In this document: positions 862-55,815 of the stretch, one piece after another
Numbering within the stretch: position 1 is the first letter of the stretch
Layout of the letters: each line of letters begins with the position of its first letter
Virus record (IMG/VR): IMGVR_UViG_3300031669_000001
Coordinates: 1-64,000 of that record
Direction: 5' to 3' (one strand)
DNA: 64,000 nucleotides
Notes under the pieces: model-generated
The model's database searches: none
The model's input: the letters and a program-made list of their open reading frames with translations, nothing else
Told to the model about the DNA's origin: nothing
Position numbers and translations under genes: made by a program

Positions 862-869
862 TATAAATA
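862..869 (+). promoter_or_regulatory. T4-like late promoter
   Basis: Exact TATAAATA upstream of GAGG SD and ATG at 898. Confidence 0.75.
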
Positions 870-897
870 TTCGTAGATCTTCCTACGAGGTAACACA

Positions 898-1470
898 ATG
901 AAGCTTAAAGAATTCTTGCTCGAATCAACTATACAGTCAGCGACAACTCACATCAGAGATAATCTCTTCGAGAGTATCGTCGATTATCTTTCTCTAGTCA
1001 TCGCGCAAATTAACAACAAAAAGCCTGATGAACTCTTCAAACCAGGTCCAAACGCGCTCGATTTAGATCATCTCGCTACAATTCTTACGGGTCTCAAGAT
1101 CGTCGCAGATCCAGATTATCGTGCAGGTATCACAAAGCGAGATGTTGGTATGAATCCTAATGATGCAAAAGAACTCTTTAACGTTCTCAATCAAGTCGAC
1201 AAGCAAGGTAAAGATCCAGAAGCAATAAAGAACGTGTTCGTCGCTCTCTGTAAGTTAGCACCTCAAGCTCTCAAGCTTCAACGTTCTGAACTCGACATAC
1301 TCAGCGCTGGAGATGAAGCGGAGCGTAAACATGAAGCTCAATCTCTTCAACAGGTTCTTACAAAGGCAACTCAACTATTCAACAAAGTTCGTGTGTCAGC
1401 CACAAGCACTCGCGGCGTTGATGTACCATCCTTGGGTACTCCCGGTCACACATCCATTAGCACCAGCTAA
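898..1470 (+). CDS. Late protein, candidate internal head protein
   Basis: Late promoter and SD; N-terminus MKLKEFLLE-S resembles T4 capsid-targeting sequence. Confidence 0.65.
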   Translation: MKLKEFLLESTIQSATTHIRDNLFESIVDYLSLVIAQINNKKPDELFKPGPNALDLDHLATILTGLKIVADPDYRAGITKRDVGMNPNDAKELFNVLNQVDKQGKDPEAIKNVFVALCKLAPQALKLQRSELDILSAGDEAERKHEAQSLQQVLTKATQLFNKVRVSATSTRGVDVPSLGTPGHTSISTS

Positions 1471-51035: not shown

Positions 51036-51212
51036 TTATTTTAGAAGTTTTGCAGCTTCATCTAACATATTGATTGCATTACGCAGGCTATCTGGAGCGT
51101 CAGGACCCATAACCCTTTGAATTTCGCCAAGCTCTTTCATTGCCTTGGAAATAATCTTTACGCCTGCTGGAACAGATCGTTCTTCTTTCAGGTATTGCTT
51201 AAAGTCACTCAT
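51036..51212 (-). CDS. Small protein with capsid-targeting-like N-terminus (58 aa; not in ORF track)
   Basis: MSDFKQYLKE-ERSVPAG...AAKLLK; ATGA overlap. Confidence 0.65.
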   Translation of the reverse strand: MSDFKQYLKEERSVPAGVKIISKAMKELGEIQRVMGPDAPDSLRNAINMLDEAAKLLK

Positions 51213-51391
51213 TTCTTCTTTCGCTCGTAAACTACAGCGCGCCTGTCACCATAGATGTACCTTTGATCCTTCTGACCATTTTGAAGGATAACAGTTTCAA
51301 CGTCAATCAAATCGTGTCCGTCGTAACAGATGCCAAATACAACCTCTTCGTCATCAGCGCAGTGTGCTTCTACGGTTACTGTAGTCGTCAT
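51209..51391 (-). CDS. Hypothetical protein
   Basis: Operon packing. Confidence 0.55.
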   Translation of the reverse strand: MTTTVTVEAHCADDEEVVFGICYDGHDLIDVETVILQNGQKDQRYIYGDRRAVVYERKKK

Positions 51392-51392
51392 C

Positions 51393-52478
51393 TTAGTTCT
51401 CCTGCATCGCTTTTCTAGCGACTGCGATTATTTGTTTCTTTTCTGCTTCATTTGGATTTCCAGGATTAGCAACAATTTCTACCTTTCCATTCTTCTTGAA
51501 GACTACCGAAAAGTGACCATACTTTTCACCACGTGAATCAGTGACTTCACACATGTCCGTCTCCATGCTACCAGCCCAATACTTGGCTTCACACAATTGA
51601 GATTCTGTCAGCTTTTCCTTGAACTCACCGCTCATCTTTTTGATGTCAGCTTTACGATCACGCATTGAAACTTCTTCAAGGCGCTTCACTACATTTTCTA
51701 TGAGATTTTCTAGGCGTTCATCCAACTCATCTTCAGTGAATTCGAATGGAGTATCTTCATCATCTTTATGAGTGCGTTCATACTTGACCTTGTCGTCGAC
51801 AAGATAGACGTAAGCCATTCGGATTAAGGTAGGCATCAACGCATTGACAACGTCATGAGAATCTGCACGATCAGGATCTAGCTTGATCACGTCAACGTCT
51901 GGAAAAACATCTGCTTCCATGACGAGAGATTCATTAACAAGTTCTTTAAAATCTACTTCTTTTTCATCGCTCATTCTATAGGTTGCAGCAGCGATATACT
52001 TTCCAGCTTTGGCTTTAGATAAAGCATCGCGAGTGATCCTTGGATGATTCACATCAATGATTGTCTTCATTCCTACAGGCTTAAAATCTTTTTGAGTCTC
52101 ACGTCTCTTGAGATCTGCAGCATCTAACCCGTAAGTTATGTATTTGAAACCTACTGATTCTTCAAGAGGTTCAAATGCATCTTGATCAAGCTTTACACCT
52201 CTAAATCCACGAGCATCGAAAATTTTCACATCTTCAATCTTATTATTTCCACGAATCGCGCAATCAAATTCTATGATGCCTTTACCATGTGCAGAATTAG
52301 TTTCCCAATTAAAAGCTACCATGTACCCTTCTTTTCCATGTGTACGAGATACTGGGTTATCGAGTTCAATAGTGGCAGTATTTTCGATGCCTAAACGCTT
52401 TGCAAATACATTTTCCAGATCATTGATCTGGTCTGCTGTGAAGTGTGTTTCTTCTTTTAGAAATTGTGAGAATTTCAT
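51393..52478 (-). CDS. Candidate multi-module internal head polyprotein
   Basis: MKFSQFLKE-E; linkers LEE-S, VNE-SLVME-A, LTE-SQLCE-A. Confidence 0.7.
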   Translation of the reverse strand: MKFSQFLKEETHFTADQINDLENVFAKRLGIENTATIELDNPVSRTHGKEGYMVAFNWETNSAHGKGIIEFDCAIRGNNKIEDVKIFDARGFRGVKLDQDAFEPLEESVGFKYITYGLDAADLKRRETQKDFKPVGMKTIIDVNHPRITRDALSKAKAGKYIAAATYRMSDEKEVDFKELVNESLVMEADVFPDVDVIKLDPDRADSHDVVNALMPTLIRMAYVYLVDDKVKYERTHKDDEDTPFEFTEDELDERLENLIENVVKRLEEVSMRDRKADIKKMSGEFKEKLTESQLCEAKYWAGSMETDMCEVTDSRGEKYGHFSVVFKKNGKVEIVANPGNPNEAEKKQIIAVARKAMQEN

Positions 52479-53155
52479 GATCTGCTTTCTAATTCTTTTT
52501 CAAGATTTGGATCTATCTTCTTCACGAGAACATCAATCTCGTCTTGGGTCGGGGTGTCACGGTTGATACCTACTAACTTTCTCGCTGCATAACCTGTAGG
52601 ATGATTTGCAGAATCTGCAAAGAAGTCAACGATGACGTTGCTGACTTCTTCGATTGTTATTTCTAGCTCATCTTCTATCTCAGCTAGATCTTCTGCTTTA
52701 TTGAAAGCTTCAAGACACTTATCAAATTGTGGAGTCCAAAACTGATCTGTAGTGCGAGCGAGTTCTGCGGCGTAGGTGAAGTGCATGCCGTGATTTAGCT
52801 CTTTAAGCTTCTTCAACACGTAATCGTAGATCTTTTGTTGCATGACACCAAAGTTGATGCCTTCGAGGATGAGAGATTCTTTGACAGGTTTGTTTGCGAG
52901 CATTGACTTTAGCTCGGCTTTGATCTTCTTGGCAACTTCACCTTTCCAAGTAGAAGCATTTGAGAGGAAGTAGAGAACTACCCCCTTGCCATCATCTGCA
53001 TGATAATTGTCTGTAAGCTTATCAAGGTCTGCCATCGCATCGAGATAAGGCTTTGCGTAAGGACTTATATTTTTCCAGTCCTTACGAATATCGTTCGCAA
53101 TCGCCGACAGTGAACGATAATTCGCTGGCGCTTCTAACAGATCTCTAATTTTCAT
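52475..53155 (-). CDS. Candidate two-module internal head protein
   Basis: MKIRDLLE-A; internal VKE-SLILE-G. Confidence 0.7.
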   Translation of the reverse strand: MKIRDLLEAPANYRSLSAIANDIRKDWKNISPYAKPYLDAMADLDKLTDNYHADDGKGVVLYFLSNASTWKGEVAKKIKAELKSMLANKPVKESLILEGINFGVMQQKIYDYVLKKLKELNHGMHFTYAAELARTTDQFWTPQFDKCLEAFNKAEDLAEIEDELEITIEEVSNVIVDFFADSANHPTGYAARKLVGINRDTPTQDEIDVLVKKIDPNLEKELESRS

Positions 53156-53196
53156 TATTTCACCTTGCATAATTCCTTAGTTTTATTCTTCATGGA

Positions 53197-53221: not shown

Positions 53222-53908
53222 ATGTATCACTTCACATATCAAACAACAAATCTTATCAATGGTCATATTTATATTGGAGTACACTCAACTCTATTATTAA
53301 ATGACGAATATCTTGGTTCTGGTAAAATACTCAAACAGGCAATCTCAAAATATGGAAAAGAACATTTCAAAAGACAAATTTTATGTTTTTATGATTCATT
53401 TGAGAAAGCACTACAGGCAGAGAAAGAGATCGTAACAGAAGAATTTATCAGCAGGCCAGATACTTATAATCTAAATATTGGAGGTCACGGCTCCTGGCAT
53501 CATAGACGCGGAATTAAAATGTTAGACGAAACGAAACGAAAAATATCTGCAAAATTAAAGGGGCGAGAATTCTCAAAAGAACACAAATCTAAATTAGGTC
53601 ATATTAAAACTATAGAAGAACGAGAAAGAATTTCTAAGGCATTAAAGGGAAGATCTTTTTCAGAAGCTCATAAACAAAAGATAAAAGAATCTCATGCAAA
53701 CGTTTCTGGAAAAAATAATCCAATGTTTGGAAAAGGACCAACAAAAGGTTCTTTTAATAGCGAAAATCATCCCCGTGCAAAAAAGATTACTATAGACGGT
53801 GTTACTTATTCTTCAGGGCTTCAAGCTGTTAAAGCTCTCGGTAGAGCTCGCGTCTATAAATTTGTCAAGTTGCGCCGTGATGATCAACAGGCTGGAATTC
53901 AAGCTTAG
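53222..53908 (+). mobile_element. Seg-like GIY-YIG homing endonuclease gene with NUMOD3 repeats
   Basis: FTYQTTNLINGHIYIGVH...YLGSG; S.EHK.KI repeats; NNPMFGK; opposite strand, AT-rich. Confidence 0.9.
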
Positions 53909-55221: not shown

Positions 55222-55815
55222 TTAGTGGAGATGCTTTTTGTGACGAGGTTCTAACTTGCGTTCACGCGCTAGACGCTTCGTTATCTCACTTAGACGGTTT
55301 TGTAGCTCACGAGGAATTCCATTCTCCTTACCACAACCCAGAGTCTTTCCAAGATTCGTTAGGTGTCGAGGGTAATGAGAGTAGACAGTTCGCTGCAGCA
55401 TAAACTTGTCGTAGTACGCTTCACCCCAAGGTCTCAACTTTCCATGTAGATAGTTTGCTGGGCCGATGTTGTAGGATTTCACCGCGCCTTCAGCCGATCC
55501 GGTCAGCATGTAATATTCTCGAAGCAACGCAACACCACGCGCGATGTTTTCACGAGGATTAAATGGACCGTCCTGTACTTGCATGAGACCATGAGATGAT
55601 TCCCTAGATGATTCGTTCTTTGCATCTTCTCGATAAGCTGATTCGATCCTGATGATGGCGAAGATGTCAGGCGCAGTTGGAAAAGAATTCCGATAAGCTA
55701 AGCGAGTTACAAGCTTTGTTATCTCTTTGTTTGGTTTGATCTCCCCACATGAAAAAGCTGGTTGAGCGAGAGTTAATGCAATTGCACCTAGAAAGAGCTT
55801 ACTTCGCTGTCTCAT
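55222..55815 (-). CDS. Lytic transglycosylase (SLT domain)
   Basis: AIIRIESAY, S.GLMQV, NI..G...L, SYN.G; N-terminal signal-like segment. Confidence 0.85.
   Translation of the reverse strand: MRQRSKLFLGAIALTLAQPAFSCGEIKPNKEITKLVTRLAYRNSFPTAPDIFAIIRIESAYREDAKNESSRESSHGLMQVQDGPFNPRENIARGVALLREYYMLTGSAEGAVKSYNIGPANYLHGKLRPWGEAYYDKFMLQRTVYSHYPRHLTNLGKTLGCGKENGIPRELQNRLSEITKRLARERKLEPRHKKHLH

Follow-up and report, generated by a model that had tools for sequence, protein, structure and literature searches.

We describe here an operon of small fused proteins in a 64,000-nucleotide (nt) window, which is the first part of the 345,069-bp viral contig IMGVR_UViG_3300031669_000001 (direct terminal repeats, 43% G+C), and we argue that its products are probably loaded into the phage head and cut apart there. 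On the minus strand between 51036 and 53170, four open reading frames (ORFs) of 231, 361, 60 and 58 residues are tightly packed, with junctions that overlap or abut (ATGA-type). The upstream 231-residue ORF, here called gene A, contains modules A1 and A2, and the 361-residue ORF, gene B, contains modules M1 to M4. The likely true start of gene A is at 53155, with an AAGGTG ribosome-binding site 5 nt upstream, so that the protein begins MKIRDLLEA; this agrees with the end coordinate of 53155 given in an initial annotation of this DNA. The parts of the operon are as follows, where an arrow marks a candidate cut and the leader scores come from a position-specific scoring matrix (PSSM) built from the N-termini of 29 other proteins.

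52475-53170, minus strand: gene A ORF in its longest form, 231 residues
53132-53155, minus strand: gene A leader MKIRDLLE, PSSM score 13.4; homologues begin MKIRDLLEA or MKIKDLLES
52877-53131, minus strand: gene A module A1, 85 residues, isoelectric point (pI) 9.1; phrog_13953 domain, E 7e-23
52859-52885, minus strand: gene A linker VKESLILEG, with two candidate cuts, VKE↓S and ILE↓G
52478-52861, minus strand: gene A module A2, 128 residues, pI 4.6
51393-52478, minus strand: gene B ORF, 361 residues
52449-52478, minus strand: gene B leader MKFSQFLKEE, of the T4 capsid-targeting-sequence type; PSSM score 15.1, the genome maximum
52158-52451, minus strand: gene B module M1, about residues 10-107, pI 4.8
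52155-52169, minus strand: gene B junction 1, PLEES, a single, less canonical candidate site; homology breakpoint between M1 and M2
51930-52157, minus strand: gene B module M2, residues 108-183, pI 9.2
51912-51938, minus strand: gene B linker 2, VNESLVMEA, candidate cuts VNE↓S and VME↓A; low predicted local distance difference test (pLDDT) score in the M3 model
51603-51914, minus strand: gene B module M3, residues 189-292, pI 4.6, net charge -12; three-helix domain
51585-51611, minus strand: gene B linker 3, LTESQLCEA, candidate cuts LTE↓S and LCE↓A; low pLDDT
51396-51587, minus strand: gene B module M4, residues 298-361, pI 8.1
51209-51391, minus strand: ORF without leader, 60 residues; weak phrog_10607 match
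51036-51212, minus strand: leader-bearing single cassette, 58 residues, MSDFKQYLKE↓E; leader PSSM score 13.9

The initial annotation had proposed that these genes encode protease-processed polyproteins, and the motifs on which it relied are all in place: FLKEE at residues 6-10 of gene B, PLEES at 104-108, VNESLVMEA at 181-189 and LTESQLCEA at 290-298; LLEA at 11-14 and VKESLILEG at 96-104 of gene A (numbered on the long ORF); and MSDFKQYLKEE at the start of the 58-residue protein of the last gene. Seven contigs from a soil metatranscriptome library span all three gene B junctions and the gene A/gene B boundary with zero differences, which means that the fusions are not an artefact of one assembly. 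This library may contain DNA carry-over, and the match is evidence of the sequence, not of transcription. The capsid protein encoded by the contig belongs to the Gp23 family (E 8e-94) and a portal gene was also found, so that the head genes are of T4 type. Among cultured phages, those nearest by the capsid protein are the jumbo phages RsoM2USA of Ralstonia (57%) and XacN1 of Xanthomonas (54%). A soil metagenome run contains this DNA within a 226-kb contig and is its probable source.

Independence and shuffling of the modules

Among about 15 billion proteins no full-length match to the 361-residue gene B protein was found. A phmmer search of 1.84 billion representatives gave 55 gene B matches with envelopes at residues 7-109, 105/108-181, 184-293 and 305-361, and these stop at the boundaries by which the initial annotation had divided gene B into four unrelated-looking modules. 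P0043, a eukaryotic homeobox repeat protein, was excluded from the matches as spurious. Each module was found alone or with other partners; constant co-inheritance, which the same annotation held to be incompatible with its proposal, was not what we found.

M3 is the core family, with about 45 homologues that are mostly stand-alone proteins of 105-135 residues behind a leader. M2 occurs as stand-alone proteins of 77-91 residues (P0032, P0039 and P0060) and also in P0048, P0053, P0040 and P0012, in the last of which it lies directly behind the leader MKFSQFLKEA. M4 is found as a stand-alone protein of 83 residues (P0054), internally in P0044 and, in swapped order, before M3 in P0014, while M1 matches residues 1-113 of P0002, the internal residues 80-174 of P0047 and the 110-residue stand-alone protein P0064. 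In P0071 and P0073 the gene A module A2 is preceded by a leader only; in P0067, P0069, P0070 and P0072 it follows other modules. The combinations observed are M1-M2-M3-M4 (here), M1-M3-x, M2-M3, M4-M3, X-M3, X-A2, A1-M3, A1-A2, A1-x-A2 (with the linker duplicated), leader-M3 and leader-A2. Most separate-gene copies of M3 and A2 carry a T4-type N-terminal leader of about 10 residues.

Siphophages of Gordonia and Mycobacterium encode A1 (phrog_13953) as a gene of its own in their early regions, near the right genome end, and it likewise stands alone in Ralstonia phage RsoM2USA; no leader precedes it in any of these. Stand-alone viral proteins of 76-90 residues match A1 at template-modelling (TM) scores of 0.88-0.98. 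We regard A1 as a widespread small phage domain, the distribution of which fits an intracellular role in the host. Among 50,697 GenBank phages searched by megablast and tblastn, gene B and the locus had no match, and gene A matched by A1 only, mostly in actinophages. A scan of IMG/VR with gene B also gave no match, and a scan with a narrow M3 alignment gave one contig, the same as the related contig L012 described below.

The AlphaFold2 (AF2) model of M3, made with 48 sequences, is a three-helix domain with low-confidence flanking linkers (pLDDT 91.2; predicted TM score (pTM) 0.78). Models of the whole of gene B were poor (pTM 0.25-0.29; pLDDT 38 for AF2 with a single sequence), and next to the confident model of M3 alone they do not indicate a single compact fold, which the initial annotation had set against its own proposal. 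A first MAFFT alignment of all fragments put fragments of M1, M2 and M4 onto M3 and was discarded. No credible fold relative of M3 was found by Foldseek against the PDB, in BFVD, among the AFDB clusters or by a wide VIA-align search, and the ESM Atlas gave none; the best VIA-align Z score of 5.5 is within the noise for helical models. From these comparisons it is well supported that the fusions consist of two and four autonomous small domains (7-15 kDa), drawn from a pool of phage cassettes that elsewhere are separate genes.

Split and fused states at the syntenic locus

Related contigs are syntenic between a metallophosphatase-like gene and an AAA ATPase (phrog_1250), and they hold the same modules there as separate, abutting genes. 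In L011, A1 is an 81-residue gene and is followed by a gene starting MKIRDLFKESTEALFLEG↓INF (leader and A2), whereas in the window A1 and A2 are joined by PVKESLILEG. In L012 the M3 gene is followed by a gene of 82 residues with the leader MKLKDFLKES, and the module of this 82-residue gene also forms the C-terminal part of P0005, where it is joined behind EFKEKLTED. A 376-nt contig of a relative from a salt-marsh metatranscriptome (compared with 51868-52681 of the window) connects the gene A region with the beginning of M3 and has 175 nt where the window has 694 nt, from which it follows that this relative is without M1-M2. The locus is hypervariable between relatives in the presence or absence of modules, in their order, and in whether they are fused or split.

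Equivalence of linkers and leaders

The leader has the form aromatic or aliphatic, x, x, aromatic or aliphatic, Leu or Ile, x, Glu and then Ser or Ala. The PSSM threshold is reached at the N-terminus by 16 ORFs genome-wide against about 3.6 expected, and the set above threshold includes a scaffold-like 305-residue ORF adjoining the capsid gene. By eye, leader-like starts were also seen in small ORFs between the protease and capsid genes (MKVEDLLEA and MKLNDLLE, below or outside the PSSM threshold). Within gene B the N-terminus has the top score and is followed by the linker Glu positions 183, 297 and 292, while internal matches elsewhere in the proteome were at chance level only.

The N-terminal leader of P0013 (MKTKFTRFVNESLVMEA↓DVF) has an end identical to gene B linker 2, VNESLVMEA. 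For a wider comparison the copies of M3 were anchored on the conserved M3 core, which avoids circularity. An aliphatic-x-E site, of which VME at residues 186-188 in gene B linker 2 is an example, ends at most four residues before the core in 27 of 31 N-terminal copies and in 18 of 20 internal copies, and the exceptions are truncated ORFs or false anchors. Homologues keep the gene A linker as KESL(I/V)xEG, and in P0067 two copies of it flank an inserted module. The fused forms have lost the Met-Lys-aromatic half of the leader and retain the ESL(I/V)xE(A/G) half. Judged by sequence, the linkers correspond to the predicted cleavage-proximal half of the N-terminal leader of about 10 residues. To keep the cleavage half and lose the targeting half is the pattern expected from selection for cutting rather than for targeting.

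Motifs were counted in a proteome of 569 ORFs and 108,114 residues. The strict double motif occurs there three times, always within genes A and B, against a mean of 0.37 in residue-shuffled proteomes. Since the strict pattern was defined after the sites had been seen, the fairer figure is that of the loose pattern ..ES...E[AG], which occurs six times with three occurrences in genes A and B (P about 3e-6 for at least three of six in 592 residues). At the DNA level, the gene A linker and gene B linker 2 form a direct repeat of 80% identity over 30 nt, and a pair of leaders forms another of 83% identity over 18 nt. Such similar leader and linker DNA may act as an in-frame recombination joint, which would explain the shuffling.

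A conserved (D/E)-F-K-x-x-L closes both M2 and M3 immediately before the linker or stop (51930-51950 and 51603-51625, minus strand), and the same end is present in stand-alone copies (P0032, P0060 and P0018-P0025). This motif might be recognised on the P side of the cut, or it may just belong to the fold. DFKELVNE was considered as a full targeting sequence and dropped, because DFKEL belongs to the conserved C-terminus of M2.

It is conceivable, if unlikely, that the linkers are relics of fusion, in which case the multidomain proteins would stay intact and the old N-termini would be kept as flexible spacers. Fusion and fission at the leader are directly visible, and a predicted unstructured linker is all that a spacer needs. 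However, a spacer need not keep a Glu and an aliphatic residue at -2, yet nearly every copy of M3 does. Nor would this explanation lead one to expect that linkers between unrelated pairs of modules converge on ESL(I/V)xE(A/G), or that the targeting half should be lost and the cleavage half kept. If the proteins are left uncut, the locus would still clearly show domains being shuffled where genes once began, though this would be of modest interest.

A gp21-type prohead protease and likeness to T4 head proteins

Cutting in the prohead, which we favour, would require a suitable protease. The contig has a Peptidase_S77 (PF03420) gene at 125213-125854 (94.9 bits against a cut-off of 27; phrog_207, E 1e-56), the product of which shares 37% identity with T4 gp21 (E 1e-26) and has retained the conserved His/Ser motifs GELNHP and GVSxRG. 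By homology, the phage encodes a prohead protease of the gp21 type, not of the phiKZ type. In the gene A and gene B proteins themselves no peptidase domain was found with Pfam or PHROG.

The initial annotation had likened the linkers to the sites of both T4 gp21 and phiKZ gp175. The first likeness holds, given the related protease and T4 propeptides with paired motifs; the second does not, as the phiKZ-type motif is S/A-x-E, whereas P3 in the double linkers is V, L or I (PLEE↓S being less clear). In the T4 record AF158101, IPII and IPIII start MKTYQEFIAE↓A and IPI starts MKTFKEF. Paired sites are present in gp24 (MAKINE↓LLRE↓S), gp22 (MLKE↓QLIAE↓A) and gp68 (MLLIPE↓THELVLE↓N), so that paired L/I-x-E sites 4-6 residues apart appear typical of gp21 substrates. 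Processing in T4 is blocked when the P1 Glu is replaced by Asp. T4 gp23 is cut at FLTE↓A (AF158101), and the capsid protein here has YLTE↓T at a similar N-terminal distance, the two not having been aligned.

The main determinants of targeting in T4 are residues 4 and 7 of the leader, and those of processing are residues 8 and 10 (Kuhn and Thomas 2022, PMC9026906). By sequence, the 58-residue protein, with F4, Y7, L8 and E10, fits these positions exactly, and the gene B leader fits them with a shift of one (F3, F6, L7 and E9); the gene A leader has L6, L7 and E8 and no aromatic residues. The T-even internal proteins are diverse, counter host defences and have only the targeting sequence in common (Rao and Black 2010, PMC3012670), and for the 76-residue IPI* small size has been argued to aid passage through the portal and tail (PMC3012670). 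No Pfam, PHROG or phmmer link was found between the mature parts here and T4 IPI, IPII or IPIII. Since the T4 family is defined functionally and its mature parts are mutually unrelated, missing homology does not exclude membership. The virion-packed enzymes of XacN1 (chitinase and lipase) are without the leader and in RsoM2USA only the leaderless stand-alone A1 was found, and therefore no cultured relative with proteomics is tied to the system.

Proposed mechanism

The classic case of an injected protein is T4 IPI*, which blocks a restriction enzyme. We consider it probable that genes A and B are in-frame fusions of internal-protein cassettes in the style of T4, which one leader loads into the prohead and which are separated from each other there, and we infer a path of targeting, cleavage, retention, ejection and effector function. 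A single N-terminal leader would take the whole precursor (41 kDa for gene B and 26 kDa for gene A) into the prohead core, where the gp21-type protease would cut after the Glu of the leader and of the linkers to yield modules of 7-15 kDa. The freed modules would remain in the head, exit with the DNA as the internal proteins of T4 do, and take effect early in the host; their small size may help them to pass the portal and tail. More tentatively, the locus may exemplify a principle of "one address tag, many cargoes" in T4-type jumbo phages, in which the leader-derived linkers would be both cut sites and recombination joints and the effector array could be expanded, reordered and exchanged. As an architecture and an evolutionary mechanism the proposal has a firm basis, and as a cleavage and injection system it is plausible.

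Several observations weigh against it. L/I-x-E is common and is found inside the gene B modules as well (e.g. at residues 68, 252, 259 and 267), so that accessibility would have to make the cutting specific. Junction 1 has just one site (PLEES) and is weaker than the other linkers, and the gene A leader is without the aromatic residues that are important for T4 targeting. Leaderless copies of modules exist (A1 in L011, RsoM2USA and the actinophages; M2 as P0039), and packaging is therefore not needed for the function of those modules. The operon is not part of the head gene cluster. With pI values of 4.6-4.8, three of the six modules are strongly acidic, whereas T4 IPI*, IPII* and IPIII* are basic (pI 9.0-9.7), and Pfam, NCBIfam and PHROG recognised no function for any of the six. 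Gene A is preceded at 95 nt by the T4 late-promoter motif TATAAATA, and another gene with a leader is preceded by it at 28 nt; with 25 found against about 31 expected the motif is not enriched genome-wide, which gives no sign of late expression.

The proteins might instead be cut and packaged and yet be structural or assembly parts, serving in the prohead core or in DNA condensation like T4 gp67, gp68, IPII and IPIII, and either be lost from the head or have no target in the host. It speaks for this that the scaffold-like ORF has the same leader, that the small ORFs between the protease and capsid genes have similar N-termini, and that basic and acidic modules alternate. We nevertheless hold it to be improbable, since a hypervariable locus outside the head cluster is typical of accessory conflict genes and not of assembly parts, and since A1 stands alone in the early regions of unrelated siphophages. 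It is very unlikely that the leader and linkers serve a cytoplasmic process (another protease, a degron or a localisation tag) with no capsid targeting at all: a leader-bearing ORF with a retropepsin-like PF05618 domain does exist at 147613-148521, but the leader matches the tested targeting and processing positions of T4, the same motif is found where T4 head proteins are cut, and the gp21 homologue retains its His/Ser motifs. Chance can be dismissed, for although the triplet L/I/V-x-E is frequent on its own (gene B has 10), the three strict double motifs all fall in genes A and B at junctions set independently by homology, and the same linkers recur in dozens of metagenomic relatives.

Comparison with known systems

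If the two genes encode cassettes that are separated in the prohead, as we propose, they can be set beside several known systems. T4 IPI, IPII, IPIII and Alt are similar in having a short leader of about 10-19 residues (hydrophobic or aromatic residues at 4 and 7, I/L at 8, Glu at 10, then A/S), a gp21-type protease in the genome, and mature parts that are small and diverse with only the leader in common. The T4 genes ipII and ipIII lie beside segB, outside the head cluster, and the genes here likewise lie beside a Seg-type homing endonuclease. The T4 proteins are, however, single cargoes cut only at the leader (in Alt also at the C-terminus), whereas here two to four unrelated cargoes share one frame with internal linkers. 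Half of the modules here are acidic, unlike the basic mature T4 proteins, and their packaging and cleavage are putative. When the T4 targeting sequence or IPIII was fused to foreign proteins, these were packaged, processed and delivered to the host (Hong and Black 1993, Mullaney and Black 1996, per PMC9026906). In such engineered fusions one tag carries an unrelated protein, as it would in the fusions described here, but the former are laboratory constructs and the latter are natural, multi-module and shuffled.

Polyvalent proteins contain several unrelated domains, and it has been proposed that they accompany the DNA and are split into separate effectors (Iyer et al. 2017, PMC5512222). They combine 2-15 unrelated domains in combinatorial architectures, which is also true of genes A and B. 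Polyvalent proteins are, however, large, their enzymatic or anti-restriction domains can be recognised, and they usually include a peptidase domain, whereas the modules here are tiny with no recognised conflict domain, and cutting would be in trans by the head protease. Head and ejection proteins of phiKZ, 201phi2-1 and SPN3US are cut after Glu by a distant relative of gp21, at several redundant sites per substrate, and the proteins here would be cut in a similar way. Their propeptides often exceed 100 residues and are discarded, whereas the leader here has about 10 residues and all pieces look like cargo; moreover, the capsid protein and protease of this genome are of the T4/Rak2 type and not phiKZ-like, the protease resembling gp21 rather than gp175. 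The promoter-stem-loop cassettes (PeSLs) of T4-type hyperplastic regions (PMC2839356, PMC4122927) are comparable in that an accessory locus between conserved genes is hypervariable, with short conserved DNA at the borders of cassettes by which recombination could be guided. PeSLs are non-coding and lie between genes, whereas the conserved joint here is coding and in frame, and so gives fused proteins.

Text searches of the literature gave no description of natural capsid-targeted polyproteins of this kind, which does not prove that none exists. What appears distinct here is that several mini-cargoes would follow one tag, that linkers derived from this tag are presumably cut in trans, and that shuffling at the joints is in frame. 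Proteins that are packaged and injected act before any phage gene is expressed, and they are hard to find because only a tag of about 10 residues is conserved. The locus suggests that an uncultured jumbo phage lineage builds such cargoes as polyproteins from exchangeable modules. If this is true, in-frame shuffling of cassettes at a conserved coding joint would be a simple rule for the diversification of cargo, and the leader-and-linker signature would allow the injected-protein repertoire of uncultured phages to be read from metagenomes. It would also provide natural design rules (tag, linker and modules of 7-15 kDa) for loading several proteins into T4-type capsids.

Neighbouring genes and other leader-bearing ORFs

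Directly upstream of the cassette operon, at 53222-53908 of the window on the plus strand, lies a SegE-like homing endonuclease gene with GIY-YIG and NUMOD3 domains. It is the only plus-strand gene nearby, falls in a low-GC patch (0.37) and is not present in the syntenic loci L011, L012 and L013. An SLT-domain lytic transglycosylase with a lipoprotein-signal-like N-terminus (..LAQPAFSC) is encoded at 55222-55815 (minus strand) of the window, and the order SLT gene, metallophosphatase-like gene, cassettes and AAA ATPase is kept in L012 and L013.

Leaders were also seen in other ORFs of the contig. At 862-1470 (plus strand) of the window, a 190-residue ORF (898-1470) has the leader MKLKEFLLES (PSSM score 11.1) and TATAAATA 28 nt upstream; it matched no known family and may be another candidate capsid-targeted cargo. 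Three further ORFs carry a leader before an enzyme domain: 112703-113509 (minus strand; leader MITFKQFLSETILED) with a phosphoribosyltransferase or phosphoribosyl pyrophosphate (PRPP)-synthetase-like domain, 147613-148521 (plus strand; leader MFAFKTFLFESMLLED) with the retropepsin-like PF05618 domain, and 140515-141147 (plus strand; leader MKLSQIFEAS), which is cytidylyltransferase-like with an HxGH motif. These may be packaged enzymes, and, speculatively, the phosphoribosyltransferase-like and cytidylyltransferase-like ORFs recall enzymes of nicotinamide adenine dinucleotide (NAD) salvage. In the head cluster, a 278-residue ORF at 122375-123211 (minus strand) has an internal leader-like stretch (..STMELLNELFDLLE↓DTAG..) near residue 110, which could represent another fusion or an internal start.

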